A stretch of DNA of 63,117 nucleotides, counting the filler, from Pelomyxa schiedti (taxonomy: Eukaryota > Protista > Evosea): NCBI GenBank assembly GCA_020536535.1. It is 14 parts of 14 records of this genome, joined end to end, with 100 filler letters (N's around TTAATTAATTAA, not from the genome) between each part and the next. Parts side by side here need not be neighbours in the genome. Positions count along the whole stretch, not along the records: positions 12,223 to 44,198 come from JAHLWZ010000262.1; 13 more parts are not named here. One strand, 5' to 3'. This document shows positions 12,223 through 43,814 of the stretch, piece after piece; the first letter of the stretch is position 1, and the number at the start of each line of letters is the position of its first letter. The position numbers and the translations under genes were made by a program. Under the pieces are notes generated by a model. That model saw nothing but the letters and a program-made list of their open reading frames with translations. It did not search any database and was not told where the DNA came from.

Positions 12223-13077
12223 AGGCTCTGGGGGTTGGCCGCGGTACCAATCGGGACAATGACGATGACAGAGTGGATGATGCGCGACTTGTCCGGCTCG
12301 ACAATGATGTCAAAAGAGTCCTCCATTGGCGTTCCTGGCCGGATCTTCCCGTTCAGGAAGTCAATGACGGTCACATTTCTGTAGTTGCTCTCCGAGATGC
12401 CCCATGGGTCCCAGAAGTGCAAGTTGAGGGCCCTGATCATCTCGTCGGTTGGGGATGCTCCCAAGAGGAGGTCATGCAATGTGTGGTCGGTGTAATCGCA
12501 AGTGACATGCTCCGGCATTGAGTACGCCTGGAGCGGCGAGAGCACGTCTTGACCAGAGCTGAACGAGGTTGCCAGTCCATTCAGGAAGGTGCTCATTCCA
12601 GACCCGTAACATCCCCAGACCTGTTTTTTGGGAGAGGTCAAAACAAAAAAATGAATAACGAACGAAAAGAGAAAAGCCATACAAGGATGTTGAGCTTTGT
12701 TCTTGAGGGATCAGGCAGGAACGTGCGTTCAGGAATCCACTCTGCAGCGAAACATGCTGATGACATTCGGTGTTGGAGCAACCCATGATGATTAGTGAGG
12801 GAAACTGGGATCAGGTTTCAAGTGAAACTTACCAAGGAGAAGCGTCACTGAGCCCAGGAGCTTCGCTCCCCCAACTAGGCACTCGTAATGCACCTTGGCA
12901 GGCACCAGCTCTCTGAGAACCACAGCCCTTGAGCATGGCGTCAGCGTCACTGTGGTCTGGAAGGGACATGCCATTGTGGCATCTGAAGTTGTTTTCACCA
13001 CTTCATCCAGGTAGAACCCAGGAAGAAAGTGGAGCACAGTCCCCTATATTTGGAGAGAAAATGTCAGGCCTAACCAC
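12223..13077 (-). CDS. Linker plus IFI44-like P-loop GTPase exons with degenerate Walker A (GCYGSGMS); 3' part of a vWA-IFI44 gene
   Basis: KLNILVW|GCYGSGMSTFLNGLATSF, LHFWDPWG (G3-like), IIHSVIVIVPI. Paralogous to 26989-28947 and 38600-39427. Runs into a linker. Confidence 0.7.
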
Positions 13078-13216
13078 ATGAGCCACAGGGGGGGGGGGGG
13101 GGGGGGGGGAAAAAAANNNNNNNNNNNNNNNNNNNNNNNNNNNNNNNNNNNNNNNNNNNNNNNNNNNNNNNNNNNNNNNNNNNNNNNNNNNNNNNNNNNN
13201 NNNNNNNNNNNNNNNN

Positions 13217-13922
13217 GGCAGCACACAGGGGTGGCTCATACCGTGGGCACTGTTCCAAGCACAGAGTGAGGTCGGATGGTAACGGCCAGTGACACTGGGT
13301 CAGTGAACCTCTGAAGAGCACACGGAAGTTGTGAAAAAAGAACCTCAGCTGGTGGATGACCGGCTTTTCTTGCAAGTTGCTTAAGATCTGATAGAGACCT
13401 AAGTAGGCTCTGATGATTGTCAAGCATGAAGCACATGGCACCAGGAAGAGCAACCTCAAGTTGTTTCACTGTTGTAGATCCCACAGCGGCAGCCATGATA
13501 ACCAACTTTGCCATGAGGTAAGGGATTGTTCTTACTAGAGGCAACTGACCACTTGTGACAACAAGAACCACTTGCAGGTCATTTGGATGTGAAATCGATC
13601 CAAGTTGAGAGGCACCTAATCTGAGCGCGTCTTCAAGGTTGGGTGTGTTGTGTGGGCACACTGCCCATTGGACCGGTTGCTGAACAACGTCAAAAAGTTT
13701 TTGTGCATCGTTCGTAAATGGACACGCAATCCTGACAGCAGTATCGTATTCTATAATCGTGAAATTTGTCTCATGCGCCTTGGACGATACGAACGAATGG
13801 AGCTCGTACAGTGCTAGACATATCAAATTGAAGCCACTCTGAACGTGTGAACCTACGTCCAGAAGTATTGCTAAGTTAACCCTGGGTAGAAGTACACATT
13901 CCGATACCAAAACACAGGCCAT
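13217..13922 (-). CDS. vWA-domain 5' exon of a vWA-IFI44-like gene (pair 1, divergent from giant gene A)
   Basis: NLAILLDVGSH (degenerate MIDAS), FTIIEYDTAVRIACPFT, PNLEDALRLG, VVLVVTSG form a Rossmann-like vWA pattern. The last 121 bp are the exact reverse complement of 40816-40936. Confidence 0.7.
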
Positions 13923-13950
13923 CAATTTTCGTTTCTGATCAGACCAGTAA

Positions 13951-14048
13951 TAATTATGGTCATTCACGGGAACGAGTGAGTTCAAGCTAACAGGCACCAG
14001 CCAACCGACCCACCTTATAAACCCCCTCTGTATCGTGCAAATAGTTAA
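13951..14048. repeat. ~98-bp dispersed repeat, inverted copy at 42480-42577
   Basis: A 71-bp core (13978-14048) is the exact reverse complement of 42480-42550, and the flanks are near-identical. Confidence 0.9.
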
Positions 14049-14241
14049 GACAAAGTTGTTTTATAAGCAAACATAACACATGAGAACAACAACACTATTC
14101 AGCCCACAACATCCCTCACCCAGACCACGTATCTTACCCGGTCGACCACTTCGGTGGTGCAAGATTTCTTCAGTCTGAGGGATGTTAGAGTCATTCTGAA
14201 GCAAATCTGGAAGGCCTGTTTTCTGCGTTTCGAAACAAAAA

Positions 14242-17200
14242 ATGCAGGTTCCCACACGGGTCGCTGATGCCGTAGGCATACTGAAAAACCTCGAGGCGAT
14301 GCGATTCCCACCATGCGCACAGCGAACCTTGCGACAGGTAATGTGTGTTGTCGCACTTACAAGCTTGGGTACCCCATGCGAGGGACAGCCACCTCTCACG
14401 AAGCTCTGGGAGACCCTCGTAGAACAAATCGCCAAAGAGAGACTCAACAGACCGCAGGTCGACGGTCTCCTCGCTGCGTGTCAGGCGACACTACAAGCAC
14501 CCAGTGACGCTTTGAAGGAACAGCTCAACCAACTTTACCGCCTGCTCGTCCCCTTCGACATCGAGGAGCTGCTTGACTTGCTATCGAAGACCGCGTCCAC
14601 AGCTCAGCTCGTAAACGGCCAGGACATCATCCTGCTACTAGGAGCCACCGGGTGTGGGAAGTCTACGACGATACAATACCTGTTTGGCTGCCAGATGGTC
14701 CATCAAAAGGTTACAGTTGGGGAGGGCTTCATCAACCACATTTGTGCTGCCCAAACTCCAGGTGAACTCACAGGGGTGGTGTCCAGTTTTGAGGCAAAAT
14801 CAGAGACCAGATACATCACAGCAGTTCAGGTCCAACCAAGTCTAATCCAACCTGAAGGTTATATTACTGTCGAGCCACTTTTCCTGTGTGACACACCAGG
14901 CTTCATGGACAACCGCGGACCTGAGACGGATGTTGCAAATGGGGTTGGATTTGTGCAAGCTGTGAAAACTTGCAAGTCTGTCAGGCCGTTTTTCCTCATT
15001 GACGGAAAAGGCATGGGTAGTCGACTGGACAACCTGAGGCAAATTCTTTCCGTTCTGGCTGGATTAATGCCACAACTTGAGTCTTGGACAGAATGCTTCT
15101 CCTTTGGTTTCACAAAGTTTTCACAAGAAGAAGCCACAAATATACGTGGAAACCTTGAACTTCTCAAGCGTGGATTGACACCTGAAGATTCACAAATCCC
15201 TGGTTTCAAAGCCGTTCTGAATGAGATTCTTCGGCAACACCCTGAAAAAGGTATGCAACGAACTGTGATCATCAACCCACTTGATGGGAAACCTGGTTTG
15301 GTTTTCAAAAAGATCCTTTCCCACGATGCTTTGGACGACCCAAACGAAGTCTTTCAGTTCTTCATTGCTCCTCGTTCCAATTCCGCCCTCACTGAGCAGC
15401 TGCGAAGGCTGCAACTGAATATACCAGAGGCACTCGAGAGGGGGGAATTTGCGTTGGTTTCGTTCAGGCTTGTGCAGCTGGCTAAGCTGGCCAAGGTGCT
15501 CAATAACAAAGCAGATATTCTGCACCTTCTGGAAGAGTGCAAAGAACTCACTAACAAGGAACTTGGACACCAGCTCGACGCTGGGGCACGGCAGCTTCAG
15601 GTATTGATGAAAGATGGGTACCAGGCCACCACGGCGGATCTAGATTCTTTCCTGCGGCCCCTGCAGCTCTTGAGAGGCTGTGACGAGACGCTGGGAATGC
15701 TTCACGAGGCAACAGCGGCTGAGACGCACTCGTCCAGGCTCATGAAATTCTTTTTTGAACAAGTTGCACAGCTGGTGAGAACCTTCCAGGGAGAGAAAGA
15801 TGCACTGTGTGAGGCCAACAAAGTGAGACTCGACAAGCTTGCGTTGCTTGGACCTCACTTTCCAGAGGTCAATGCGCATTTTGATGCATTGCTCGCGTCC
15901 GTTTCCACTACTGTCCAAGGTGCAGTCGCAACAGTACAGGATCTTATTGCTTCAAACCAATTCGACGAGGCACGCCAGACATGGGCGAGGCTGGAGGCTG
16001 CCTTGCAGCGTTTTGCGGTGCACGTGGGGCCAACAGTTACCTCTGAGACCTCCCCCAAGATTCGGGCCTTCTTCTTGGCCCACTTGCAGAAGAGCTCTCA
16101 AGAGGCAGATGAGTGCTTCTGCCTGCAAAGCATGACCTCTGACGTCCAGAAGATATCCGACAGTCTTCAAGTCCTTCACTCTTGCCTGCATACCTATGGC
16201 ATTGGTCAGTTATTGGATTTGAAACAGGTGGCTTCACTTAAAGAGCAGCTGGTTGTGCGACTCAGGACCCAGATTGAACTCCTCCATAACCAGATTGTTG
16301 ATCGATTTTCACAGAGCAACGAGAACTTTGTATACTCTCAATGCAAGCAAGACTTTCTAACTATCAAGGCACTTTGTGGAATACCAAATGTTCCCCGGAC
16401 TGTTGAGCAGCTTTTTGAAAAAACGAAATTCTTTGTTGTTGACCAGACTAACAATATCACAAGACAATTTTCACAAGCTGTGGATGCTCTCAAGAGGGGT
16501 GAAGTCGTGGATTTTACCCGTCTGGCACGGGGAATGAGGCTTTTGAGGGACACTGATTGGCTTGAAGAAGCAATCCCTGGGTGCTATAAATCCGCTTTAT
16601 CTGAAGTTGAAGATATAATCTCACTACAGCTGGATCAGACCGAGAGACAACTCCAAGAAATTCGCCTTGAGCTTGGAGAAGAATCAGAGTTGAAGAAGCT
16701 TGCCTCCATTGTGGGTGTTCTGCATGAAATAACCCCTCTTGAGAGGATACCACTGCCAGCCTTGCATGAGCAGAAATGCCGACTTCTGCAAAGCACGCGA
16801 GATATCCTGAAAGAGATTCTCACAATTATACAAGATACCTTCAACCTTGAGAAATACGCAGTTTCTGCTTTACACCAGGGTGTTGAGACATTACTTCTCC
16901 GAAAGAAAAACATTGAGGGCAGCAGTCCAGCCACCCTATTTTTGGCTGAGAAGGGCTATAAAGATGCCCAGGAAATCACGCGAGCCATTGAAGAGAGCAA
17001 GAACACACTCTCCACATTGACATTGTCCGCAACTGGGACTGGAATGGAGAGTGGAAATATCCAGGGATCCAGTGCAATAGGAGCTGAAGTTCTGACAAGG
17101 CAGCAAGAGCTGGCAGAAAGCATCAAAGCAAAAGAGCTGGACTTGCAGCAGTTCCAGGAGTTATCAGCCTCCAAAATTTTATCATCACAGCAGAGGCAGC

Positions 17201-20200
17201 AGCTCGGAGAACTTGGATTCAGTAGTATAGCCCGCCTTGAGAAAAGCATTGTGGATCAAGTACGGCGATGTGAGACTCTTGAAAGTCAGGGACTGCTTTA
17301 CCAGTTCGACAAAGTGGATCCTGCCAGGGCCGTGGCAGCGATATCATTCATAAAGATCCTCGGTACGCAGTTTCGCTGTGGACTCTACAACGATTTGCAC
17401 TGTGCTCAGATCAAAGAAAAGCTGGAATCGTTCCTGACAAAATACTGTGAAAATTTGGTTGTCCGCGTCCACGGAGCCCTTGACAATATTACAATCCACC
17501 TCAATGGCCAGGCTCAGTCGAAGATTTCAGACGATACTGCCACTCTCCTATCCTTGCTGCAGGAGTTGGTCGAGCTGGAGAAATACCCACTGATGATGGG
17601 GTATTTTTTTAGCAACATCAATGTTCTTGCTAGCTCCCGGGATGCTATCTCAATAATTGCAAAGGACCTAGATGCAAGCATTTCCCAGCATTCCATGAAC
17701 AAGGATGTCAGGAGTCTACAAGCAAAACTTGATATCGTGCAGGCACTGTGCCGTCTTGATGCGGTTTGCTCTAACCAGGACTCCCCCAGTTTCTCAGATT
17801 TGAGAAAAAAGTATCAACCTGAAGCACACAGAGAAATTGGCGAGACGGCTACCAACGCAATGAAGTCGTTGGACAAACGTGAGTGGCAGCAGTTGGCACT
17901 GCTTCTTCATGATATTGAATCCAGCAGTCGTGGCAATCAAGCCACACTAAACGCCATTACCAGACCAATTGAAACGAACCTCATAGACTTCTGCAATGAT
18001 ACTAAGATGAAGGCCATTCTACTTGGGCAAGAGATATCAACTGAGTGGCTTGCCTCCATAACCGACATTGTCTCCCGTCTTGATAGCATCAGGGAGGCCC
18101 TCAAATTTCTGTCCAAGTACCTTCAGCTTCCTGCAGATACTGGATCACAACCAGGTTCTACAGCACCGTCATCAAGCGCAATTCCCAGCAACCCCTACAA
18201 CGACGCCATTGAAACTACGAAGCGAGAACTGTGTCAACAAATGATGACAGCAATGAAGAGTGTTGTTGCATCCATTCACAGTTGTCATTACTTAGAGGCA
18301 AACCAAAAGATGGACGTGGTCAAAAAGGCAAAAGGGATCATGGGCTCCCCTTATCTCTCAGTGGAAGCTGCTAATTCTGTTGATAGTTTCACGGCAACTC
18401 TTTCTGAATCACTCAAGAGCCTTGAGAGATTCTACACCACGGCCGAGGTTGGTGAGTACAGCTTCAAGAACCCCCCAAAAGATGTATATGAGAGATTCAG
18501 GCAAGTGTTTGCAACCAATGCTGAGTGCAAAGAAACATGGGAGAAAATTGAGGATGTGGTACGAGATAAGTTCAGAGCCGAACTGAAGAACATTAAAGGG
18601 CTCAGGACACCAGATGAAAGGGCTTCACTGATGAGAAAAGTTGAATTGGCCCTCAACTTCCTCCCCACACACCTCTCACAGACCTTGGGGGACGAATTGG
18701 CACTTCTAAAAAAAGACTTAAAACAGGAGCAAGAGGATTTGGAGGTGCAAAGGAGCTCAGCTCTTCTTGGAGGGGATGCAGAAGAAATTGAACGAATGTG
18801 GAACACCCTTGTTGCAAGAGAGGGAAGAAGTGGAACGACGGTACGGAAGATGGGACAGGAGATCATCGAGCTGGTAAAGAAACACCAAGTTTTGATGATG
18901 GAGACGTTCCTCTCGTCTGGGGATTTGACCAGTGCTGTTGGGGAGATCAAGAAGGTGTTCTCGTTTCGTGGAATGGCGTCGGCACTGCCAGTCATCAATG
19001 TCCTCCTGAGCAACATGTGCTTCCACATCACAGCACTCCCCCCAAAGCTTTTGCCGATCCTTTCAATCCCATCGCTCACAGTAGAGTCTGACGGCGCTCT
19101 TACCAGCGCCTGGTCGCAACTTGTTACACTTCATGGCATCTGGCTATCTGAAAGCAGCAACTCCGACTTAGTTGCCGCCGTGTTTCAGACTCCCGACTTC
19201 CCTACCAAGGTCGACGAGGCCAAGGAGAATATTGTTGTGTATTTCAGGACCCTCCAGAAAAAAATGTTTACAAGCATGGAGTTGAACAACGTGGAAGGGA
19301 TTCACAGTGTGCTTGACCGAGTCAGTGCACTTACTTCGTTCTTTTCCGTGTGCCAGAAAGTGATGCCCTCCCTTTGGGGATCGTACTCAGTGGTGGTGCA
19401 AGAGGTGAAGAAGTTCTTTGCTGCCAAGACCTCGTTCATCCTTGAAGCAGACTTGTGCGCCACTGGAGTGACAGAATTCGAAAAGACACGAACTGCTTTT
19501 TATGCACTTGTGAAGTCCCATGTCGACCTTTTCCGTGAGTCGTCAGGAATTCAGAAGGCACACCCAGATCTTGCCCTCTCTGCTGAGTTACTTGCAGATA
19601 TGAACTCTTCTCTCGTCGCGAAGATCGCCAAGCTTCACGAAGATGCAATGGTGTTTGTGAATACACGGAAGGGAAGAGGAACTGTCACGGAGAAGAGGAG
19701 GTTCAATGACTGCTTCAAAAGCCTCAAGTCATTCAGGGCATCATTGCCTGGGGAGCCAATGACATCCGCTCTGGACAAGGCAATTTCAGAGATTGAGCAT
19801 GGTATCACTGGTTTGGTGGAACAAATTGACAGGGAACTGTCTATGGAAATGGCAGAAATGACAGGGGCGTCAATCCCCATTGATAGGGTAGCCATCAATC
19901 TTATCAAATTGAAACAGCTCGGTGAGGCCTTCCTCCAGTCCTCAGAGACTGTCTCTGGCCGCATTGACGAGTTCATTTCTCGCTTCAAAGGCGCCTCTGG
20001 AGCCACAGGGTGTTCAAAGCTTGCAAGCTTGCTTGTTGACGAGCCCACAGGCATTGGGGCGAGTGTCGTGCAAGACTGCCCTGCTCTGAAGCTGTCAATG
20101 GCCAACCCAGGTTGTCAAGTCCGTTGCAATACAGCCACTATCAAATACGTTCTTGAGAGGCTACGAAGCGTTGACCCAGGTGATATTGAAAAGGAGAAGC

Positions 20201-21251
20201 TGAAAAAATGTTATGATGCCTTCAGCAAGAAGTATGCAAATCTGAAAAAAGTCCACCTCAAACCGGATCTGGAGAATGGGAAGATTTCTATCCTGGCAGG
20301 AATCAAGAAAATTATAACAGGTATTCACATTGAGCATGATGAAATAGCCTCAGAAAGTGACTTGTATTCTTGCACTGCTATCAACTGGACAGGGCCAATG
20401 AATGATAGCCTTCCAGAACTTCTTGCACACATATTCATGCTGTGGACTCTGTCTCACGCGGGGAACTACTTTGAGATTGCCAGTTTCGTGATAGATGACA
20501 ATGACAAGGACAAATACCTGTACNNNNNNNNNNNNNNNNNNNNNNNNNNNNNNNNNNNNNNNNNNNNNNNNNNNNNNNNNNNNNNNNNNNNNNNNNNNNN
20601 NNNNNNNNNNNNNNNNNNNNNNNATAGCCTTCCAGAACTTCTTGCACACATATTCATGCTGTGGACTCTGTCTCACGCGGGGAACTACTTTGAGATTGCC
20701 AGTTTCGTGATAGATGACAATGACAAGGACAAATACCTGTACATCCCACACCCAGCGCAGGTTGTGGCTATACTTCGAATGCTCGGAGTCGGTTACTCCA
20801 GCCGGAAAGGACTGGGACCAATCAAGAACATGATACAGCTGGGTACTGGAGAAGGCAAGTCCGTCGTCCTTGCAGTGGCGAGTATTGTACTTGCGCTTTA
20901 CGGGATGCAGGTGAGCTGCGCCTGCTACTCGTCGTACCTGAGCGAGAGGGACTGGTCAGACTTCAAGCAGCTATTCACGATGCTCAACGTTGAGTGCCAA
21001 ATACGGTATGGCACGTTCGACGTTCTGTGTGAGGCAATACTCAACAAGAACGGCAACCTGCGGGAAGGGATCAAGAGGCTCATAACTGAAGGAATATGGC
21101 CCATAAAGATGACAGACACAGCAGTACAGCGGCCACACGTTCTGCTTGTGGATGAGATTGACGTGTTCTTCAACAAGGACTTCTACGGCAACGTGTACTC
21201 GCTATCCTCGCCGCTACAGGACCCGTGCATCATGCGGCTCACGGACTTCAT
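14242..21251 (+). CDS. Giant protein A: P-loop GTPase - long helical/coiled-coil region - SecA-like SF2 helicase (3' end missing here, probably 41037-42438)
   Basis: Intronless ORF of more than 2,200 codons. G1 LLGATGCGKSTT, G3 LCDTPGF. SecA_DEAD-like PHPAQV...IQLGTGEGKSVV...YSSYLSERD...YGTF...LLVDEIDVFF. Confidence 0.88.
20405..20742. other. False gap: 119 bp duplicated on both sides of a 100-N gap (20405-20523 = 20624-20742); same tract also at 35707-35825
   Basis: Direct sequence identity. Merging the copies restores a continuous reading frame. Confidence 0.9.
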
Positions 21252-23677: not shown

Positions 23678-23994
23678 AACAAACAAAAAAACTTTCGGTG
23701 AAAAATAGTGAGCTGAATCAAAAAAACACCACGTTTCTAAAGTTTAGCTTCTGTTGGTGAATCGGGCGTAACAACAACAACAACGACAACAACAACGACG
23801 GGTTCCAGATGGTGGAGATTTGGAACGGCCAATGGAGTTTTCTCGAAAATATTAAACAATTTCTTTCTTTGCACCCCAGGGCTGTCTCTCCACCGAAGGT
23901 CATAAATATACAAATATCGTTGGAAGCGTGGCTTAGAGTCACTTGGGAGAAAACGATCGGGAGTCACCGCAACCAGTTTTACTGTGGGCACACA

Positions 23995-26593: not shown

Positions 26594-26730
26594 CAAGCAA
26601 CCATACGCTGATGTTGTCTTCTTGCTTGTTTCTGAAGTCTGAGAGTGTATTCGGCTCAGTGCTGGGCAATACTCATCATAAGTTGTTTTCAAGATTATCT
26701 GGATTGCACAGGAAACAGTGGTAGTCAGTG
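26594..26730. repeat. Diverged direct duplicate of 43903-44146
   Basis: Shared blocks AAGCAACCATAC...TTGTCTTCTTGCTTGTTTCTGAAGTCTG and AAGTTGTTTTCAAGATTATCTGG...CAGGAAACAGTGGTAGTCAGTGATTC. The 26.6-kb copy lacks roughly 110 bp of the middle. Confidence 0.85.
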
Positions 26731-32600: not shown

Positions 32601-35600
32601 CCCCAGCAGAGGCAGCTTCTCTTGGGGCTCAAAGTCACCAGCATCGTCCGGCTCGACAGGTGCATCGAGGAGAAAGTGCGGCGTTATGAGGCATTAGATA
32701 GGCAGGGCCTGCTTTACAACTTTGACCAAGTGGACCCGAACCACGTGGTGGACTCACTCTCTTTCATGAAGGTGCTATCGAAGGAGCTCCGCTGCGGGCT
32801 ATACAACGATCTCCATTGTACCCAGATCAAAAGAAGGATAGAGGAGTTCATGACTAGATACTGTGACACTCTGGCCCAAAGGGTGTCAAGGGGGCTTGAG
32901 AATATCTCAGACAACATCCATCATGACGTGCTGCTGAAAATCTCTGCAGATGATGTGGCAGCTCTCCTGGACCTGTTACCTGAACTGAAGGAGCTGGTGA
33001 GCAACCCCACCCTGAAGCAGTTCTTTCGCGGGCACAGCAGCATGGTTGAGGAGATCAAAGCCACCCTCTCACAGATTGCCTCTTATCTGGAGCACAACAG
33101 TGAGGTATCCGTCAAAGGCATCACAACAAAACTGGCAAATGTGTCCTCTCTCTGTCCTATGGAGACCATCCTCTGGTCTGACAGCCGTCCTTTCTCTCAA
33201 TTGAGGAGGGCACTCCTAGACCAGCAGCAAGAGCAGATAAAACACAGTGCCAGAGAAGTATTTGTAGCACTGGAAAAAGACAGGTGGATGGAAGTGGGGC
33301 AATGCCTATCCGAAATCTGTGAAAGTGGAAGCCAAGCAACCATTCGGAGTTCCATGGCGCAAGTGAACACCCAGCTTCAGAGGTACTGTAATGATCTGAA
33401 AATACAAGTTTCTCAGCTCTCTCCAGAGGTCTCAGACCAGTGGTTTTCCCTGCTTTCTAACATTGGCTCTTGTCTAGACAAGTTGAAAATGGCGGTTGAA
33501 GTTCTATCAACATGCAGGTTGCCACATGACACGCCTTCAAGCTGCAGGCCAGACCCCACATCCCAGCACAGACTTGTGAAAGACATTGAGCTGGAGTGTT
33601 CTAAGTCCATTCTCAGTGCCATGGCATCCCTGGTGAGCCTTGTCTGGAAGTGTCAGTACACAGAGGCTCTGACGAAGGTGGAAATCGTCAAAAAAGCTCA
33701 GAAAGCCATTAGATCGCACCTCTCGGAAGAGGCTTCACACAGTGTTGACGATTTTGAAGTCTCCCTTCGTGCTTCGTTCCAAAGTCTGATTGACCATTAC
33801 AAATCTGTGAAGATAGTCTGTTATCATCAGATTTTTTCTCCAAAGCTTGTCTTCAAACAACTCAGTCCCACATTCTCCTCCAGCATGCTATGCAAAGAAA
33901 ACTGGGAAGCAATCGAGGATGCCATCAAGCACAGATTTCATGTTGACATTGCACAGATACAAGAAATGCAAGCTCCCTTTGAACAAAAGCAAAAATTACT
34001 GAGAGAGGTTGCTCCTTTGCACTTTCTCCCTGAAACCCTCAGTTCTCCACTTGAGAAGGAGATTTCACAGATAACTGCCTCGTTGGATGCAGAGCACAAT
34101 AGGTTGATAACTGAAAAGTTGTCAGCCTTTGAAAATGAAGATCCCCCTGAAATTTTACGAATTTGGAACACGTTACTAAGAGGAGAAGGAAGAAGTGGGC
34201 CGATGGTCCAAAATATGGAAGTGGAGATAGATAAGATATTAAGAACGATGTGTACTTTCGCAGTGACTTCTTTCTCCAGTGGTAACTTCACAGTTAGTTT
34301 TCAGAATATTAAAAAAGTATTTACACTCTCTGAGCTTCAAAGTGATATTTCAAGTATTCACATCCCAATTGATGATATGTGCTTATCTGTGCATAAGTCT
34401 CTAGAAAAGACTTTCTCTTTCTTCTCAGATCAAACTCTTTCAGTTGAACTGGATTCTACCCTTAGTGATGCCCTGGCACAAATAATTGAGCTCCACAAAG
34501 TCTGGCAGTCGTATTCTGATTTACCTGACTTTTTGAGGATCCTTATTGGCTCAGATTTCACACAGAGAGTGAATAACACAATGGAGAGCATTGGTGCCTA
34601 TTTAAGAAAACTTGAAGGGGACCTAAATTCCTGCCTGTCGTCCTTTGATGTTACTCACCTCCAAACTGTTCTGGATCGGGTTCATTCCATTCCTTTCTTT
34701 TCAACTCTTTGTCACCAAGTTGTACCTTCATTATCTTGGAAGGATTTCTATTCCTTCTGCTTGGAGAAAGTGCATGACACCCTTGAATCTGTCCGGGCCT
34801 TTATCTTGGAAGTGGAAATTTGTAATCCTTCAATATCATACCTAGATAAGGGAAGCCTTGTGTGCCAACCCATTAAGTCAAGGCTCAACTTTCTAAAACA
34901 TTTATGGACACTAAAAATTAAACACCAAGACCTTAGATTAACACCAAAAATAATTGAAGAACAAACAAGCATAGTTTTTGGTAAGATAACCAACATTTCT
35001 CAGTGCATGATTGGCATTGTAAAGGAGTATAAGCTTACAGTAAGGTTCGAGGATAAACTTGTAGCTTCAAAACTATTTCACAGCTATTTCACCAGCTTGA
35101 GGATATATGCAGAGCAGCTGGAGGAACCTTTTTGTGCATTCATACAAATGAGTGTCAATGAAGTTAAGAGAAATCTATGGGCTTTAATTGAATCTGGGAA
35201 AAAAAACCTGCAAATGCTATCAGATGTATCCAGAGTTGCAGAAGAACTCATTGCCCTTAAACAAACTGGTGAACATCTATTCTATTCTGAAGAGGTAACA
35301 ATTTTCATTGAAGCCTTCATTCAGGAGTTCAAACAACGCCATTGCAGCCTATATAAACTAGGGTGTGCATTAATTGGTGATAACTCTGGCATGGGTATTG
35401 TGGTTGCACACGACTCTTCCAGTTTGAAGGCCTTTCTCCCCCACACCAGAGTTTTTGCTCCTGAAACAAGAAGTATGGAATACATTCTTACAAAACTAGA
35501 AGGAGAGGATATTGACTCCACTCAAATTGCACAGCTTTTAGTAAAGTTTGATTCTACATACTCTAATCTACGGAGGATGTTTCTTGTGGCTGATTTAGAG

Positions 35601-38084
35601 ACAAGCCAGAGATCTGTAATCAAACTGATAAAGAATTTCTCTTTGACTACTGAGCAAAATCTCGGAGTGCCTAAAGTAGATAGGCAATGCACAGGAGAAA
35701 TGACTGATAGCCTTCCAGAACTTCTTGCACACATATTCATGCTGTGGACTCTGTCTCACGCGGGGAACTACTTTGAGATTGCCAGTTTCGTGATAGATGA
35801 CAATGACAAGGACAAATACCTGTACATTCCACACCCAGCGCAGGTTGTGGCTATACTTCGGATGCTCGGAGTTGGCTACAAAAGCAACACCAAAGTAAAG
35901 TCAGTACCGGGGCTGATCAAGAACATCATTCAGTTGCAGACAGAGGAGGGCAAGTCGGTGGTGCTTGGTGTGGTGAGCATCGTGCTGGCACTTTACGGGA
36001 TGCAAGTGACCTGTGCGTGCTATTCGTCGGACCTGTGTGAAAGGGACTGGTCAGATTTCAAGCACATGTTTTCTCTGCTGGATGTGGACCTTTACATTCA
36101 GCATGGAACGTTCGACGTTCTGTGTGAGGCAGTACTTAACAAGAATGGTGACCTGAGGGAAGGGATCAAGAGGCTCATAACTGAAGGAATATGGCCGGTG
36201 AGGGTGGAAGGTCCTGCCGAAAGGCCACACGTTCTGCTTGTGGATGAGATTGACGTGTTCTTCAACAAGGACTTCTACGGCAACGTGTACTCGCTATCCT
36301 CGCCGCTACAGGACCCGTGCATCATGCGGCTCACGGACTTCATCTGGGAAAGCAGGGCAACTGTAACAGCGGAGCAGGTGCAGGCCACGCCAGCATATAA
36401 GCAATGCGTCACCAAGCTCGGCGATTGGTCGTTCCTTGTGGATTCTGCGGTGGCCGACATGCTGCTGGCACTCAAGACATACTCGTCACACGACTACATT
36501 GTCAGCGACGGCAAGATCGGATACAAGGAACAGGATGGCGTGTCGTTCTCGGTTGTGTTTGGGTACAACACTCTGTTTGCGTATTATCACGAGGTGGACC
36601 AGGGTAACATCACCAGACCCACTCTTGAGCTGAACGTCGGCCTCATTGTGCGTGCCGGCTCGTTCTCTTATGCTGAGCTTCCAAAGAAGTTCTCGTGCAT
36701 CATGGGTGTGACTGGGACCCTTGAGCACCTCAGCCCAGTTGAGAAGGAAATCATGAGGGAGACCTACGGCATCGCAAAGGAGACTTACATCCCCTCCGTC
36801 TATGGCGAAACCCACAGGACGTTTGCTCTGAATCGGGACATCAAGATCGTTGAGAAGGAACGCCATTTCGCCGAGATCTCCGCTGAGATCAAGAGCCGCA
36901 TCCAGGGGCGCACCCCTGGCACATCCAGGGCTGTGCTTGTGTTCTTTGAGTCCAGGAAGGTACTCATGGAATTCTACCGCCTCGAGCACACAAAGTTTGT
37001 CATTCCCTTCAAAATCATCACTGAGGAGGGGAGTAGGATGCAGAGGAAGGCGCTCCTCAACAGTCCATGCCGGCCTGGGCATGTCCTCTTATTGACCTCT
37101 AGTTTGGGTCTCAGACTGGAATTTTCTTCATTTGCCAACTATGGTTTGCATGTAATCCAGACTTTTTTGTATGAAAACTGGGCTACTGAAGAACAAATTA
37201 TCAGAAGAGCAACTCACTTCTACTCAGAGGTTTCCTTCAGCATTGTATTACTGGATGAGAGTCTCCAAAGAATGGGCATGGGCCCAGCTGAGGTGCAATC
37301 AATAAGAAACTCAGAAGCTATCTACAGCACATTGATGAAGTATAGATGCCACTTCTACAACAGGGCTTGCACAGAAAATAGTAAATTCCTCGGTATCGCC
37401 TTGGTTGAGCACACTGAATTGCAGGAATTTGTTCATAGTCTCTACATAACTCAAAATTCTGAAACAGCCAAGTCGCACTTACAACAAAAGAACATCAGCA
37501 TCAACAAACACCGGAGTATCCTTGTGTGCCCAAAAGTCAAGACTCAAAAAGATCCCCCACTTGGGCAAATATGTACACTGTTACCACCAACCAAATCCCC
37601 CCTTGTTACCAAATTTCAACCAGTAATGAATAGAGTTATTATTTTGATGGTAGATGCCTCCAATAGTGCTGTTCTTGAGGATATTAAAAATTCTTTGATC
37701 TTATTTCTACTGGAGAGCCTTGAGGGAGTACTGATATGTATTATTTCTTTTTCAGAGGGTGCATACATACAGTGCCCCTTTACAAGGATTAAAACTGAAC
37801 TGATAAGTGCTACCCAAGCCAAAGACTTTTGTCACACTAAGGGAAAAGTGAATGTACTTGCAGCTTTTGAAAAGGCAAAAGCTTCAATCAGAAGCATTCC
37901 CACTGAATTTTTTTCACCATGCTTTTTTTTCATATTATCTTGTTGTGATGCCAAGATAGGTACAGACCTACAGAAGATAAAATCCCTTGTAACACATCTC
38001 TCTTTCTATCAACAGACTTTTCTAACTTATCCAGATACCTGCACAAGCGACCCTTACAGGCATTTTTCTTGGCTCCTCATCTGA
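29679..38084 (+). CDS. Giant protein B: P-loop GTPase - helical region - degenerate SecA-like helicase - vWA (2,801-aa unspliced ORF; probably extends by splicing to about 39427)
   Basis: Paralogue of A throughout: GGTGCGKSTT, LCDTPGF, VDEIDVFF, GVTGTL, VLVFFE. Walker A reads QTEEGKS and motif VI is lost. C-terminal vWA IILMVDASNS...ISFSEGAYIQCPFT. Confidence 0.88.
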   Translation: MATASGAQPPPTASVAGELRRVVRLAERRAAGEDVEAEGGEAWRALRELATAEGLCTQQASSVLDECSELWRAAPSPLRMDRLRERLGALRRMLVPFDVEELLSLLERAAEAARAVEGKSVVLVLGGTGCGKSTTVQYLFGARMALKDVRVEQGVVPHVSVEGKPPPELEHIVASFEAMSETRHVAVVEVNPDLLVGLPGLDTTDDGSCGNRLFLCDTPGFGDSRGPEVDVANAFGLVKALQGCHSVWPLLLVESTDIMAERQQKLRQVLAMLEDLIPTLAPYACCFSFGFTKFSAEDSATIRGQLETLQRGLVQDSSSGTGFRVMLNEMLKQHSGRISKCLVINPLDRNPREVYRKVLAHPPIKEPTEVFRICIPPSSKSAFSQQMETQLCCVTRAIQREEFLLVRTWVTNLEKLVIAAVGEWGEVTHWLTRCKDAAREQLQEKVNAGAQQARRYMDIRSTKPTAEDLDSLVRSYQFLDHCDSILSDALGDQKFSLQLERCLEEQVLEVLHESLMEGYDPLSQANQVCLEKLLALCPHFRTARETYHKMVPRVHESLASEVSKVKCSVSSGDFAGAVLGSRLLKDTLVRFEAHVEPTAATRSIGQIESHFLTHLRDVFHTTERCCCVGAHFDKGSEEQLSRGLSVLQVCIDATHNVKELAQVSEQASDLKGQLVFQITTQMENLHTQITQQEIKGKLDFSRCRQQFLTMKVLWSLPFTHAAATGTAAFTPLQTTKGGIRQIYSRTQSFFATQVHSLVSDFVDTFDGLHAEESVDLSPLTRRLKQLKLNEWLEEAIPGCCTSAMREVEDCLKEHMESHGRWLDDVHLDVDCNADLTQLTPTLLFLEAVTPLEAIPLAAVVEMKKKLLERIRGLLGAVLDGIQDAFDLEKHSLSALLCEVENLRATKSKMEAGSPAYLFLAEKGYRDVRELERAIEDNKGALSALVGPADLVESTNKMELQLKRFRELQASWVLTPQQRQLLLGLKVTSIVRLDRCIEEKVRRYEALDRQGLLYNFDQVDPNHVVDSLSFMKVLSKELRCGLYNDLHCTQIKRRIEEFMTRYCDTLAQRVSRGLENISDNIHHDVLLKISADDVAALLDLLPELKELVSNPTLKQFFRGHSSMVEEIKATLSQIASYLEHNSEVSVKGITTKLANVSSLCPMETILWSDSRPFSQLRRALLDQQQEQIKHSAREVFVALEKDRWMEVGQCLSEICESGSQATIRSSMAQVNTQLQRYCNDLKIQVSQLSPEVSDQWFSLLSNIGSCLDKLKMAVEVLSTCRLPHDTPSSCRPDPTSQHRLVKDIELECSKSILSAMASLVSLVWKCQYTEALTKVEIVKKAQKAIRSHLSEEASHSVDDFEVSLRASFQSLIDHYKSVKIVCYHQIFSPKLVFKQLSPTFSSSMLCKENWEAIEDAIKHRFHVDIAQIQEMQAPFEQKQKLLREVAPLHFLPETLSSPLEKEISQITASLDAEHNRLITEKLSAFENEDPPEILRIWNTLLRGEGRSGPMVQNMEVEIDKILRTMCTFAVTSFSSGNFTVSFQNIKKVFTLSELQSDISSIHIPIDDMCLSVHKSLEKTFSFFSDQTLSVELDSTLSDALAQIIELHKVWQSYSDLPDFLRILIGSDFTQRVNNTMESIGAYLRKLEGDLNSCLSSFDVTHLQTVLDRVHSIPFFSTLCHQVVPSLSWKDFYSFCLEKVHDTLESVRAFILEVEICNPSISYLDKGSLVCQPIKSRLNFLKHLWTLKIKHQDLRLTPKIIEEQTSIVFGKITNISQCMIGIVKEYKLTVRFEDKLVASKLFHSYFTSLRIYAEQLEEPFCAFIQMSVNEVKRNLWALIESGKKNLQMLSDVSRVAEELIALKQTGEHLFYSEEVTIFIEAFIQEFKQRHCSLYKLGCALIGDNSGMGIVVAHDSSSLKAFLPHTRVFAPETRSMEYILTKLEGEDIDSTQIAQLLVKFDSTYSNLRRMFLVADLETSQRSVIKLIKNFSLTTEQNLGVPKVDRQCTGEMTDSLPELLAHIFMLWTLSHAGNYFEIASFVIDDNDKDKYLYIPHPAQVVAILRMLGVGYKSNTKVKSVPGLIKNIIQLQTEEGKSVVLGVVSIVLALYGMQVTCACYSSDLCERDWSDFKHMFSLLDVDLYIQHGTFDVLCEAVLNKNGDLREGIKRLITEGIWPVRVEGPAERPHVLLVDEIDVFFNKDFYGNVYSLSSPLQDPCIMRLTDFIWESRATVTAEQVQATPAYKQCVTKLGDWSFLVDSAVADMLLALKTYSSHDYIVSDGKIGYKEQDGVSFSVVFGYNTLFAYYHEVDQGNITRPTLELNVGLIVRAGSFSYAELPKKFSCIMGVTGTLEHLSPVEKEIMRETYGIAKETYIPSVYGETHRTFALNRDIKIVEKERHFAEISAEIKSRIQGRTPGTSRAVLVFFESRKVLMEFYRLEHTKFVIPFKIITEEGSRMQRKALLNSPCRPGHVLLLTSSLGLRLEFSSFANYGLHVIQTFLYENWATEEQIIRRATHFYSEVSFSIVLLDESLQRMGMGPAEVQSIRNSEAIYSTLMKYRCHFYNRACTENSKFLGIALVEHTELQEFVHSLYITQNSETAKSHLQQKNISINKHRSILVCPKVKTQKDPPLGQICTLLPPTKSPLVTKFQPVMNRVIILMVDASNSAVLEDIKNSLILFLLESLEGVLICIISFSEGAYIQCPFTRIKTELISATQAKDFCHTKGKVNVLAAFEKAKASIRSIPTEFFSPCFFFILSCCDAKIGTDLQKIKSLVTHLSFYQQTFLTYPDTCTSDPYRHFSWLLI

Positions 38085-39427
38085 ACTTGAAATTCTCCAA
38101 AGTACACTTTCCCCACACCCAGTGTTCAAAAGGAATGACTACTTTGCCTTGCGTCACCATCTATTTGAGATAAAGCAGATTAACTGCCCATTGGAAGTAG
38201 TTTTCTGCCAAGGTATAAGTGGAGAGCTGCAGAAATCGACAGCTCCACTGCACCTTGCCATGTCAGTCTTCCCAACTGCAACAAGTCAAAATCTATCCGA
38301 GGTATGTATCTTTGAGAGTCTCCATCCTAGCTCTAACTACTAAAAGGGGGTCATCTCTTTTCAAGCACCAGGAAACTCTGAATATTATCATTCTTCCCCA
38401 GTCCCTATTGACAAAGGAATAAATCACACCAGTCCTTTCCAATCTCTAGTGAGTTTTGCTCCAACACCAAATGCCGCCAACAAGCTACTTCCTATCCCTG
38501 AGTTTATCTACTTCCAAGTCATGATTAATAGCTTTTGGTACACTGGACATACATCTCTGAATCATGGTAGGAACTGTATCTGTGGTTTTTTTTTTAACTC
38601 AAAGTCAGCCTGGTTTGCTGGTGACTTTCTTGCGGAAGAACTTACAGGAGGACCACTCAATATTATGGTATGGGGAGGACAGGGCTCAGGAAAATCTAGT
38701 TTCTTGAATGGGCTAGCAACTTCTTTTGGATTTACAGAACATGTTTTATCTCCACTGCCAGTGCACCCTTTTCCCTGCCCTGATTCAACAATGTACACAA
38801 GACATTCCATTTGGAGCCTGCAGACCTACATCGACGGCGGGGCACCGCTATTGCGGGAAATCAACATTCAGTTTTGGGATCCTTGGGGTTGGGAGCAAGA
38901 TAGTCTGGTCCCATTTGTTTCCGGGCTTGTTGACGTCGGAACTTCACAGCCACAGTTCCTCTTAAAACCCAAGAATCTCTTGCAGCAATCCCCAGATAGA
39001 ATAATTGACGAAATAATTTTGGTTGTCCCACTTTCAACAGCACTGGACAACATGAGTTATTTAGAAAACCAAGTCCAAGAAGCTCAGAACCTTGGTACAG
39101 TTTGAGCTCATATCCTTTGTTTGATAATAAAATTAGGCCTGCACCCAGTCATTGTATTCAGCTTTGTCGACCAGGTACGACAAGAAGAAGTTCAAAGCCG
39201 TGTCAAAAGAATCCTTGCTAGTCTCCACACTACTTCTGGGGATACATTTGTTCTGGCAAACTATGTCAATGAAGAAAGGAAGAGCTGGCAGAAAGACTCC
39301 CAGTACTGGTCAGTGTTGCACAGAGCGCTTCTTCATGCCACCAACTATCGTAAGTTCAAACACCCACTCTTTGGGTGCTTGTGAAATTGGCCTCCAACCA
39401 GGTTTTCAAAAAGGGCGAAGCCATTAA
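38035..39427 (+). CDS. vWA C-half, linker and IFI44-like GTPase exons; predicted spliced continuation of giant gene B
   Basis: IPAQATLTGIFLGS...FKRNDYFALRHHLF aligns with the vWA C-half of 40237-40917. LNIMVWGGQGSGKSSFLNGLATSF, QFWDPWG, IIDEIILVVP, LHPVIVFSFVD, TFVLANYVNEERKSWQKDSQYWSVLHRALLHA follow (IFI44-like). Confidence 0.75.
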
Positions 39428-40236
39428 TGTGTGGCAATTTTCGAAAAGAAGCACCCTGAAAAAGAAGGGGTCAACCTCCCACATAATTTTCTCTATTCCA
39501 CGAAATACAGGGAGAATACAAAGCCTGTAAGTGCTGTTCCATCGAGTGCGTTCGTTATTTATCAGCATAACCAACAGTCTAACAAATACCGAGTGGCGGC
39601 CTGGGGACACACTCCCAACTAAGCAACACCCTCTAATGCTCCATAAGTAACAACACAAGTGATTTGGAACTTCCAGTCTGTTTGGTACTTCTAAATATGT
39701 GTTGCACTTCCACAGTCACCAAGATTCCACATATCTGAATGATGCAAACTGGTTTGTTGGGCACAGCCGCTTTCAGCTACAGCCCATACGAATACAGGAA
39801 AAGAAATCAAATGTACTCACTATTTTACGAGTCTCCTCTGCTTTTTCTAGAATCATAGATTCATAGCATTTTTTTATATACTCCTGCTGTCTAACCATCA
39901 GCCTCAGAGGTCTCATTGCTCTTATTAAGAAAAGTAAACGACTACAATAACAATAAACCTCAAAATTCGTTCGTTTGCTTCTATCTGCAATTGTGTTTAG
40001 TGCATGGCTCCGAGAACAGCTAGGTCGTGGCACTATAGCTACCATGATGTGGATTACACTGTATTGACATCAAGTTTCTTCACACCGAATTCGTCTTGTT
40101 TCCCAAGAAACTTGTTCCCGGCCAACACCAGTCAAAACGCTTGAATAACGACCCTGATTTCACACTCATTTCCTTTTTTTTCTTCACAGTCGAACGGCAC
40201 TGGCTCATCAGTGTGCTTCAAAAAAAAAGTGTGGCA

Positions 40237-40936
40237 ATGGCACATCCCTTGTTGCACACCTTGGGGCCCACAATCGACAAGTCACTTCTCGTAGTTCTTG
40301 TCGATGTCAGCACTAGTGTCCAGACCATTAGTTCGTTCCTCCGAGCCGTTTTGGCCCAGGCAGCTGCTACTTGTAATTGGGAAATTATCGAGTATAACAC
40401 TGAAGCCAGGAGAGTCTGCACGTTCACAAATAGCTCAGAGAAGGTGCTTCTAGCAATTCAAGGATTCCATCAAATACCAGCAAGCTCTGACGGTGGTCCC
40501 AACCTTGCTGCCGCACTCAATATGGCGTCCTCTGTGGTTCTAAAAGCACCACCTCTAGCGAACATTGCTGTAATTATTATCACAGGAAGCCAGTTGTCTC
40601 CATCAGTCTCCATACCTTATAATAATCTGAGACAGTGGTTGATTCCACCACCTGCGATATTTGTGGTAACTGTTGGACCACTACCCATGGAGGGAACTGT
40701 TCGTTCCTCCTTACCTGGAGCCAGATACTTTAGACTTCAAAATTACCCCACCCTCTTGCCCTACCTGTTTACAGCCATGGGTTCTGGCAACACAGCCGAG
40801 CTGATGGATATCTCATTTTCACAACTTCCGTGTGCTCTTCAGAGGTTCACTGACCCAGTGTCACTGGCCGTTACCATCCGACCTCACTCTGTGCTTGGAA
40901 CAGTGCCCACGGTATGAGCCACCCCTGTGTGCTGCC
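40237..40936 (+). CDS. Fourth vWA paralogue (5' exon of another vWA-IFI44-like gene; continues into gap)
   Basis: LLVVLVDVSTS (intact DxSxS), WEIIEYNTEARRVCTFT, GPNLAAALNMA, VIIITGS, AIFVVTVG. The 3' 121 bp are shared with 13217-13337. Confidence 0.75.
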
Positions 40937-41036
40937 NNNNNNNNNNNNNNNNNNNNNNNNNNNNNNNNNNNNNNNNNNNNNNNNNNNNNNNNNNNNNNNN
41001 NNNNNNNNNNNNNNNNNNNNNNNNNNNNNNNNNNNN

Positions 41037-42438
41037 TCGGGACATCAAGATCGTTGAGAAGGAACGCCATTTCGCCGAGATCTCCGCTGAGATCAAGAGC
41101 CGCATCCAGGGGCGCACCCCTGGCACATCCAGGGCTGTGCTTGTGTTCTTTGAGTCCCGGGAGACCCTCCTCAACTATTACCGCCTCGAGCAGATCAACT
41201 TTGTCACTCCCTTCAACATCCTCACTGAGACAGCAAACGAAAAGGAGAAGCGAGACCTGATCAAGATGGCGAGCCGACCCGAGCAGGTAACGTTGCTGAC
41301 TCGTTGTTTTGGCCGAGGCACGGATTTCATATCCTACAGCTCGACAGTGAACGCTAATGGAGGTGTGCACGTAATTCAGACATTTTTGTCTGAGGAGCGA
41401 TCTGAGGAAGTTCAGATCATTGGCAGAACAGCTCGGCAGGGACAGGAGGGCTCGTTTAGCATGGTCCTGCTTGATGAGGATTTGGAGAAATACGACCTGC
41501 GGGCACCAGAGATAAAGGGTATACGAGACTCTGGGATTTACCATGATACCCTGGACAAGCACAGGAATGCGTTCTTTGACAGAACCTATGAAGAAAACAC
41601 CAGGTTCATCGGCGTAGCCTTGGCTGAACACAACAACTCGTTGGAGTTTGTAAACAGCCTCTTCACAGCAAACCTGGCCTCAGTCAGGACCTTCTTGGGA
41701 GAGAGAAACAAGAAGCCTGTTGTTGTCAACTCTCGCACCATTGTCTTGATGGATGCCACAGGGTCAATGAGCTCACTCCTGCAAAAGGTGAAAAATACAG
41801 TGGGCACTATGTTTGAAAGGGCCATGGCCATTCTTGAAGAGAACTCATGCAATCGGAACTGCTTCCAGCTTCAGTTTGTCGTGTACCGCGACTATGACTG
41901 TGGTGTTGACGATGTTCTGCAGACATCGTCGTGGACTTCCAATCCAGTGGAACTTCGCGACTTCATGGACAAGATAGTGGCGAAGGGTGGAGCTGACTGG
42001 GAGGAGGCCGTCGAACTGGGCCTGTGGCATGCAAATGAAGAGGCCAAGAAGATGCCAATCTCTCAGGTGATACTTATTGCTGACGCTCCAGCCAAGACCG
42101 TTGCCCAAATCACTGATTACCGCAACAGCTATGGTGGGGAGGGCATGTGGTGCAGGTCCAAGTTTGGTGCTGCCACACACTGGGAGGAACAAGCTCTCGC
42201 ACTCAATTCCCGTGGCGTGCATGTGCACTGCTTCTATATAGACAACAGGGTGGCCGAAAACTTCGGCAAGATCGCGGCTGTGGGTGGTGGACAGTGTGCT
42301 CTCTTGAACGTGAACGCTGCCTCTGGCGCTGACGATCTTACGAATTGTGTCACACAGGTAATCCTGGGGGATGTTGGACACCAGTCTGGTAAGGGAGACA
42401 CATTCATCGAGCAGTACAAGCTCAAGTATCACCTTTGA
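41037..42438 (+). CDS. C-terminal part of a giant protein (probably A): intact SecA-like helicase C-lobe plus vWA with MIDAS
   Basis: VLVFFES, LLTRCFGRGTDF, GGVHVIQTF, QIIGRTARQGQEGS. vWA IVLMDATGSM...FVVYRDYD...GGADWEEAVELGL...ILIADAP. The first 121 bp are identical to 36833-36953. Confidence 0.85.

Positions 42439-43756: not shown

Positions 43757-43814
<58 letters not shown>

Follow-up and report, generated by a model that had tools for sequence, protein, structure and literature searches.

Two lineage-expanded gene families sit together and recombine in a nuclear region of the anaerobic amoeba Pelomyxa schiedti, on scaffold JAHLWZ010000262.1, which occupies positions 12223-44198 (31,976 bp) of the 63,117-nucleotide stretch of DNA analysed here (the window). 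Family 1 consists of single-exon giants of about 2,800-2,900 aa, in which a GIMAP/AIG1-like GTPase (G) domain is followed by helices, a SecA-like superfamily 2 (SF2) ATPase and a VWA_4 domain. Family 2 consists of amoebozoan proteins of about 500-770 aa in which a vWA domain forms the N-terminus and an IFI44-like G domain the C-terminus. In one of the giants (giant 2) the G domain is intact, the motor has decayed and the VWA_4 domain has been swapped for a whole family 2 unit, the composite being expressed as one spliced mRNA. What is new here is the recognition of the vWA-GTPase genes as an amoebozoan family, of the giants as a family of protists, a rotifer and intracellular bacteria, and of the transcribed fusion between the two. 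An earlier note on this DNA had listed six G domains, two SecA-like motors and five vWA domains, four of them small and one of the giant type, and Pfam, alignments and structure models bear out that inventory.

The two families and their fusion

The P. schiedti DNA was obtained by whole-genome amplification from seven single cells, assembled by SPAdes (single-cell mode, k up to 121), and scaffolded with P_RNA_scaffolder, which joins contigs by RNA-seq read pairs (PMC8887013). Because SPAdes contigs were joined in this way with RNA pairs, four 100-N gaps split the scaffold into five contigs: c1 (12223-13116), c2 (13217-20523; 7.3 kb), c3 (20624-21251), c4 (21352-40936; 19.6 kb) and c5 (41037-44198). 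The members of the two families lie on them as follows, with the strand in brackets.

12223-13043 (-): downstream exons of unit A, which encode the linker domain and, with a degenerate P-loop (GSGMS), the IFI44-like G domain; truncated by the scaffold end (open reading frame (ORF), tblastn)
13044-13241 (-): intron of unit A, with GT donor and AG acceptor; holds gap 1
13242-13997 (-): vWA exon of unit A (vwaA), Pfam VWA 27.2 bits; vWA domain region 13239-13997
14242-20523 (+): N-terminal part of giant 1, a single exon of 2094 aa (ORF) with a GIMAP/AIG1-like G domain (about 14449-15591), then a long helical region
14242-20523 plus 20624-21251 (+): long ORF of giant 1 in its scaffold form
20743-21251 (+): SecA_DEAD half of giant 1, motif I (GTGEGKS) and DEID box intact (Pfam, alignment)
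27092-28947 (-): unit B (Pelo_3380, 532 aa), a vWA domain (about 28113-28947) without the metal ion-dependent adhesion site (MIDAS) and an IFI44-like G domain, the intact P-loop lying in an upstream exon
29490/29676-38084 (+): ORF of giant 2, first exon 29676-37988; G domain, helical region, SecA-like motor and, from about 37611, a small-type vWA domain
38035-39381 (+): exons of unit C fused to giant 2, encoding the vWA remainder, linker and IFI44-like G domain (GQGSGKS) (NCBI model P0001, spliced RNA)
40096-40936 (+): vWA exon of unit D (vwaC; vWA domain 40096-40914), DxSxS intact, Pfam VWA_2 33.7 bits
41037-42438 (+): giant-type C-terminus, a helicase-C domain with canonical motifs V and VI and VWA_4 (LMDATGSM); in all likelihood this is where giant 1 ends, moved here by the scaffolding

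Both giants open with a conserved G domain in which alignment reveals the motifs GxTGCGKST, SETR, DTPGF and FTKF, and the N-terminal motifs of the family (GxTGxGKST, S.TR and D[TS]PGF) are present in both. An AlphaFold model of this domain (predicted local distance difference test score, pLDDT, 85) finds its best fold matches, in the PDB and in Swiss-Prot, among the GIMAP/AIG1 (IAN) GTPases (E about 1e-5), with which it shares the G1, G2 and G3 motifs. The template modelling (TM) score of these matches is below 0.5, and the domain is therefore termed GIMAP-like rather than assigned to that family. It differs from GIMAP/AIG1 also in being embedded in a 2,800-aa protein, and no Pfam AIG1 match reaches threshold: the profile has none in the Pelomyxa giants, and a Legionellales homolog, at E 8e-4, is under the cut-off. 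Sequence searches of the G domains against the PDB gave matches at the level of the P-loop only. About 1,500 helical residues, within which no domain is recognised, follow the G domain.

The motor that comes next carries SecA signatures above the Pfam cut-offs. SecA_DEAD scores 39.3 bits at 20626-21249 (cut-off 24.6), and P-loop_SecA, Helicase_C and VWA_4 (33.2 bits) are found in 41038-42435. The family's motor motifs, TGEGKS, DE[VI]D, FGRGTDF and GRTARQG, are all present in c3 and c5 taken together, and the C-terminal VWA_4 with MDATGSM is present at 41038-42435. Giant 1 is thus read as a canonical member of the family. Giant 2 departs from it in both respects, since its motifs I, V and VI are degenerate (QTEEGKS, LLTSSLGLRLEF and QIIRRATHFY, respectively) and a small-type vWA domain stands in place of VWA_4. 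No SecA preprotein cross-linking/binding domain or wing/scaffold domain was detected in the giants by Pfam. Because only SecA_DEAD and P-loop_SecA are found, and in a cytosolic eukaryotic giant, we regard the motor as a SecA-like SF2 enzyme and not as a translocase subunit.

The ORF of giant 2 is 100% identical to NCBI protein P0001 (“helicase carboxy-terminal domain protein”). At its 3' end the position of VWA_4 is taken by the small-type vWA domain and the IFI44-like G domain of unit C, and a spliced RNA contig of 2,379 nt spans 36924-39477, with four GT..AG introns of 42-46 nt removed. Because this contig covers the junction, the fusion of giant 2 with the vWA and IFI44-like domains is transcribed, and the fusion reported in the earlier note is real. 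The four introns fall within 1.4 kb of unit C, whereas there are none across the 8.3 kb of giant 2 or the 6.3 kb of giant 1; the genome mean is 7.4 introns per gene (PMC8887013). The G+C content of giant 2 is uneven (29223-33222 against 33223-35222), being 0.54-0.585 in the first 4 kb, 0.38-0.45 beyond and 0.52 over the stretch in common with giant 1.

Family 2 is represented by four units. Their small vWA domains lie at 13239-13997 (-), about 28113-28947 (-), 37611-37988 (the C-terminus of giant 2) and 40096-40914 (+), and their IFI44-like G domains at 12223-12680 (-), at 27095-27682 plus an upstream exon (-) and at 38449-39381 (+). Units A, B and C each unite in one protein a vWA domain at the N-terminus with a G domain at the C-terminus. 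For unit A this is seen in an RNA-type contig of a separately filed run (X3), which contains vwaA-specific sequence and a shared 121-mer and then jumps from the donor at 13241/13240 to the acceptor before 13043; the spliced frame, VPT joined to GTVLHFLPGFYLDEVVKTT, matches the paralog Pelo_6043. Unit D is represented by its vWA exon alone, which ends in a 121-bp tract shared with unit A. Although its flanks are covered, no X3 RNA-type coverage extends over vwaC (39485-40678), and unit D may be silent or a pseudogene. The catalytic degeneration described in the earlier note holds for motifs I, V and VI of giant 2 and for the P-loop of unit A, where K has changed to M (GSGMS); the P-loop of unit B is intact in the upstream exon.

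The G domains of units A, B and C are not recognised by Pfam. A word-indexed homolog search with the vWA-IFI44 unit gave no match, and an exhaustive profile search was needed: with a three-sequence profile, 226 relatives were found among 1.84 billion representatives. An N-terminal vWA domain occurs in 20 of the 71 relatives scanned for it, and all named relatives are amoebozoan (other Pelomyxa loci, Acytostelium, Dictyostelium, Pellita and Nematostelium). A profile search with the IFI44-like domain reached septins (E 2.5e-7). An AlphaFold2 model of the G domain, built from a 47-sequence alignment, has a pLDDT of 86. When this model was compared with Swiss-Prot by Foldseek, the top match was the Dictyostelium vWA protein DDB_G0292188 (E 1.5e-14), and ranks 2-6 were filled by IFI44 and IFI44L of human, chimpanzee and mouse (E 9e-13 to 1e-11, TM 0.69-0.70), the next family being EngB (2e-6). 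Outside the amoebozoans no match is better (E about 1e-12, TM 0.70), a clear gap separates IFI44 and IFI44L from the next family, and their C-terminal G domain has the same fold. Protein-language-model neighbours are likewise IFI44-like clusters.

In IFI44 the N-terminal partner is TLDc, whereas in Pelomyxa it is vWA, and the identity is 16-19%. No TLD/TLDc domain was found in any unit or in 81 relatives scanned. The modelled structure supports the description of the small G domains as IFI44-like by fold, in agreement with the earlier note, while membership of the IFI44 family fails on TLDc. Closer relatives are the Dictyostelium proteins DDB_G0292188 and DDB_G0269482 and other amoebozoan proteins, which have the same N-terminal vWA domain, linker and IFI44-like G domain and give significant matches in sequence and in structure. 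Compared with the Dictyostelium proteins the Pelomyxa copies are shorter, some have a degenerate MIDAS or P-loop, and one is fused to a giant. Elsewhere in P. schiedti, scaffold JAHLWZ010000482.1 carries two tandem vWA-IFI44-like units (768 aa, then 377+395 aa) beside a chromodomain/RT_RNaseH retrotransposon.

Distribution and origin of the giants

Homologs with the same module order and lengths of 2,400-3,600 aa are present in the rotifer Adineta steineri, in MMETSP and EukProt transcriptomes and in metagenomes. Prokaryotic genomes were scanned for the motor as well, and it turned up in Legionellales, Chlamydiae, Wolbachia and gammaproteobacterial metagenome-assembled genomes (MAGs). The Legionellales (2,613 aa) and Chlamydiae (2,340 aa) ORFs adjoin gyrA, murG, murD and coaBC and are thus in genuine bacterial contexts; they carry the N-terminal G domain too (profile E about 1e-32; blastp against the Pelomyxa giants 1e-12 to 1e-16). 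Set beside these giants of protists, Adineta, Legionellales, Chlamydiae and Wolbachia, giant 1 has all modules and motifs, with matches that span the G domain and the motor. The giants of Legionellales, Chlamydiae and Wolbachia are without the C-terminal vWA domain, and giant 2 differs by its decayed motor and foreign C-terminus.

On JGI contig Ga0606104_004 (L006, 191 kb), three giant SecA_DEAD genes lie within 28 kb, encoding 2665 aa, more than 4351 aa and, in a split gene, 1254+768 aa. Two contigs from MAGs labelled Gammaproteobacteria/Pseudomonadota (L007 and L009) carry giants that are 57% identical to the metagenomic protein P0003 over the motor and vWA domain, and the tree places these giants together with P0003; the two contigs may represent eukaryotic DNA assigned to the wrong bin, or else transfers of very recent date.

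In a quick tree, bacterial and eukaryotic rows are interleaved, with weak support and several long branches, and because of this we claim no direction of transfer. Nevertheless, since the family is common to obligate intracellular bacteria and is intronless in Pelomyxa, its sequences suggest that giants have moved between hosts and intracellular bacteria. A stronger version of this idea is that the giants are effector-type genes of endosymbionts, acquired by horizontal transfer and either domesticated or slowly decaying, with the vWA-GTPase genes as unrelated neighbours. We consider this improbable. It would account for giants without introns in a genome that averages 7.4 per gene, for an Adineta copy that is likewise a single exon and for the two-module homologs in intracellular bacteria; an earlier survey also placed GIMAP-type GTPase and SecA-like domains among the effectors of the amoeba symbiont Amoebophilus (PMC3482391). 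However, the tree gives no transfer direction, the ORFs run uninterrupted for 2,800 aa and are transcribed, giant 2 is spliced to a host-type gene, and the paralogs are old, with saturated synonymous sites.

We found no functional account of the giant family in the literature, nor any functional description of this combination of domains, as the earlier note had supposed. Its word “undescribed” does not hold for the sequences themselves, which databases already list under the names of hypothetical proteins and, in Swiss-Prot, “vWA domain-containing proteins”.

Sequence exchange, scaffold order and neighbouring sequence

The paralogs in this region are deeply diverged yet contain tracts of 93-100% identity. 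Giants 1 and 2 share 35% identity overall in their N-terminal parts (20-50% at the amino acid level over 2,000 codons, with synonymous sites saturated), but their identity leaps to 93-99% at 20377-20781 and is then patchy through the motor. Similarly, the vwaA and vwaC proteins are 38% identical, yet the last 121 or more bp of the two exons agree exactly, 121 being the SPAdes k. The sharp switches in identity were seen again in separately filed runs, and judged from the sequences they fit gene conversion better than random amplification chimeras. Together with the vWA exchange, the decay of motifs and a 6-kb repeat described below, these patterns uphold the earlier note's proposal of rapid diversification. 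Where measurable, pN/pS is 0.12-0.35, and elsewhere synonymous sites are saturated. Within the conversion tract dN/dS is 2.3 over 49 codons, too few changes to carry meaning.

A trace of an older arrangement is present downstream of the giant-type C-terminus:

42480-42577 (+): vwaA promoter copy, 98 nt that repeat the region upstream of vwaA and the first 47 nt of its coding sequence (reverse complement of 13951-14048); ends in a stop

This copy sits 42 nt past the stop codon of the giant in c5. Its sequence suggests that it is the relic of a tandem vWA unit, and that the order “giant followed by unit” preceded the fusion.

How much of the apparent arrangement is real depends on the joins between contigs. 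For gaps 2 and 3 the judgement comes from overlap and homology of the sequences, and for gaps 1 and 4 from DNA and RNA-type contigs of separately filed runs (X1, X2 and X3; Logan contigs).

13117-13216: gap 1, a T/C homopolymer inside the unit A intron; the true gap is a few bases (DNA contigs; a spliced RNA contig bridges)
20524-20742: gap 2 artefact, 100 N plus a 119-bp exact repeat, 20405-20523 being equal to 20624-20742 (self-blastn)
21252-21351: gap 3, not continuous; no giant-like homology downstream
40937-41036: gap 4, not continuous; no contig bridges

At gap 1 a loose end, ACTTCTTTTTTCCCCCCCC, overlaps the end of c1. At gap 2 merging of the overlap preserves the reading frame; the overlap is real and therefore the scaffold ORF contains an artificial duplication of 39 aa. 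Following gap 3, translated comparison (tblastn) of the sequence after 21251 revealed no homology to the giants. Past 40936 the DNA contigs enter a homopolymer intron of the same type as in unit A, and the c5 contigs begin at 41128. The exact identities of 119-121 bp at contig ends are, on sequence grounds, k-mer overlaps at branch points of the assembly graph.

Comparison with giant 2 indicates how the parts of giant 1 may be put together. Projected onto giant 2, the end of c3 falls at 36343 and the start of c5 at 36833, an offset of 489 nt or 163 codons, in frame, and identity to giant 2 climbs to 90-93% on both flanks of this missing piece. The Logan DNA contig over 36154-36953 has about twice the depth of its comparators (X1, 89 versus 38.7 and 67.6; X2, 44 versus 26.2 and 31.4). 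Canonical family motifs are present in both c3 and c5. Giant 1 therefore probably consists of 14242-20523, 20743-21251, about 163 aa collapsed into c4, and 41037-42438, for a total of about 2,893 aa. That 41037-42438 stems instead from a third giant copy is unlikely. The insertion of c4 between c3 and c5 would be explained if RNA read pairs of giant 1 fell on the shared tract, and we infer that the order of the scaffold is partly artefactual. The earlier note held that one scaffold carries two giant genes, but this is not established: the linkage rests on RNA-pair joins through a collapsed repeat, and it is unproven whether 41037-42438 is the C-terminus of giant 1 or part of a third copy.

These considerations raise the further possibility that much of the “system” is assembly artefact and pseudogenes, produced by multiple displacement amplification chimeras, collapsed repeats and RNA-pair misjoins. 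The amplified DNA of seven cells, the single-cell assembly mode and the RNA-based scaffolding all speak for this, as do the discontinuous gaps 3 and 4, the K-to-M change in unit A, the lack of RNA coverage over vwaC and a near-identical 6-kb copy elsewhere. Against it, c2 and c4 each independently put a giant beside vWA-GTPase units: within c2 vwaA lies head-to-head with giant 1, and within c4 are the GTPase-zinc gene (see below), unit B, giant 2 fused to unit C, and vwaC, so that either giant adjoins such units inside one contig. The same junctions are present in runs that were filed separately, two of the gene models have the backing of spliced RNA, and the long ORFs are intact. We therefore hold a largely artefactual origin to be quite improbable, and retain the reading that members of two families adjoin and recombine here. 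Whatever the function of these genes, RNA-pair scaffolding across gene-conversion tracts can produce an apparent “locus”.

The 6-kb copy referred to above is the interval 21554-27519, which recurs at 99.4% identity on JAHLWZ010000402.1 (9055-15031 of the compared stretch) with different flanks. It holds the GTPase-zinc gene, an anonymous 251-aa ORF and part of the G domain of unit B, one breakpoint falling inside that domain, and represents either a recent segmental duplication or assembly redundancy. The gene it contains is

22225-23443 (+): GTPase-zinc-ribbon gene (Pelo_3379), probable exon 1 22225-22350 with the P-loop, exon 2 from 22487 or 22505 to 23443

Two in-frame GT..AG solutions exist for this gene, with G1 in the probable upstream exon. 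Its motifs are G1, DTPG, TKQD and a conserved CPxCG...GCDGTTTCGNR. The longer form CPxCGxVxxKVxGCDGTTTCGNR is common to Pelo_3379 and the metagenomic MMR_HSR1 protein P0167, and the Pelomyxa protein has an atlas score of 0.84 to MMR_HSR1 clusters. The NCBI model of Pelo_3379 (530 aa, 22496-26566) omits the P-loop exon 22225-22350 and adds distant unsupported exons, including part of the ORF at 23809-24564. That ORF had been taken for a transposase relic, an assignment without support in Pfam (no match at E<=1) or the PDB (no match). Toward the scaffold end, 42900-44100 is of low complexity on both strands; its ORFs are rich in Thr, Cys and Ser, TGCTGT hexamers form an array at 43741-43811, and short similarities (78-88%) connect 43898-44143 with 26592-26734.

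Function of the two families

From their architecture, we tentatively propose that these proteins may serve in defence or symbiont control at the interface with intracellular bacteria. The vWA domains would bind a protein ligand and act as a clamp. The G domains, working as switches, would make the proteins self-assemble on a membrane or particle in a nucleotide-dependent way, as in GIMAPs, septins and IRGs, and the SecA-like motor would use ATP to pull or remodel the ligand held by vWA, following the logic of Midasin or MoxR-vWA. The arena would most likely be the phagosome or symbiosome. Midasin/Rea1, MoxR-vWA pairs and the prokaryotic vWA+NTPase conflict systems (Kaur et al. 2020, PMC7159879) all couple a nucleoside triphosphate (NTP)-driven motor to a MIDAS/vWA ligand binder. 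They differ from the Pelomyxa proteins in that the motor here is SF2/SecA-like and not AAA+, and the homology is limited to the vWA fold; no effector domain or ternary gene set of the vWA+NTPase conflict kind was seen in the window, and the neighbourhoods of the bacterial homologs look like housekeeping genes.

Several observations argue for a conflict role. First, the giant family is common to obligate intracellular bacteria. Second, its distribution is patchy and lineage-expanded, as in the cluster of three giants on Ga0606104_004. Third, the paralogs exchange sequence and their motifs decay. Finally, the G domains resemble IFI44 and GIMAP, and Pelomyxa itself harbours endosymbionts (PMC10579272).

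A number of points weigh against this proposal. DDB_G0292188 is induced by starvation and rapamycin and its null mutant does not aggregate (PMC6637605), so that the phenotype of the sole tested relative in family 2 is developmental. Giants are not neighbours of vWA-GTPase genes in Adineta, on contig L006 or within 10 kb at the Pelomyxa locus on JAHLWZ010000482.1, and the linkage that the earlier note had envisaged elsewhere was thus absent from the two other genomes and the other Pelomyxa locus checked. Among the relatives scanned there is no sequence-level link to TLDc-bearing IFI44, and the fold matches of the giant G domain to GIMAP stay below a TM of 0.5. The tree of the giants is poorly resolved and some of the “bacterial” MAG contigs may be mis-binned. 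Lastly, both the reconstruction of giant 1 and the explanation of the scaffold order are inferences.

Some of these same points would be expected if the proteins were non-immune NTP-regulated scaffolds, acting in nutrient or starvation signalling, membrane traffic or the cytoskeleton, with clustering due to tandem duplication. The aggregation defect and the induction by starvation and rapamycin of DDB_G0292188 suit such a role, as do the absence of giant/vWA-GTPase linkage in other genomes checked and the purifying selection where it is measurable. To our knowledge the function of IFI44 is itself unsettled, which we count on the same side. A non-immune role is harder to reconcile with the patchy distribution and varying copy number, the decay of motifs and swapping of domains, and a family common to Legionellales, Chlamydiae and Wolbachia but not to free-living bacteria generally, and we regard it as rather doubtful. 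Defence or symbiont control is accordingly kept as our tentative proposal.

A bolder, and unlikely, extension is that the giants are a new class of cell-autonomous immune or symbiont-management mechanoenzymes. Their counterparts in intracellular bacteria would then be effectors, the whole forming an arms-race module exchanged between the two sides, which in Pelomyxa, a host of obligate prokaryotic endosymbionts, would have teamed up with, and become fused to, IFI44-like GTPases. If this were true, the tie of the IFI44-type G domain to host-microbe conflict would reach as far as the common ancestor of amoebozoans and animals. Should the functional reading proposed above hold, the vWA-GTPase genes would offer a tractable pre-metazoan context for IFI44-type GTPases, whose mode of action in vertebrates is not yet clear, since orthologs of these genes occur in Dictyostelium. 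There would then also be a large, so far uncharacterised, family of GTPase and SF2-motor giants common to hosts and obligate intracellular bacteria, a sharing that is typical of molecules at the host-symbiont interface.

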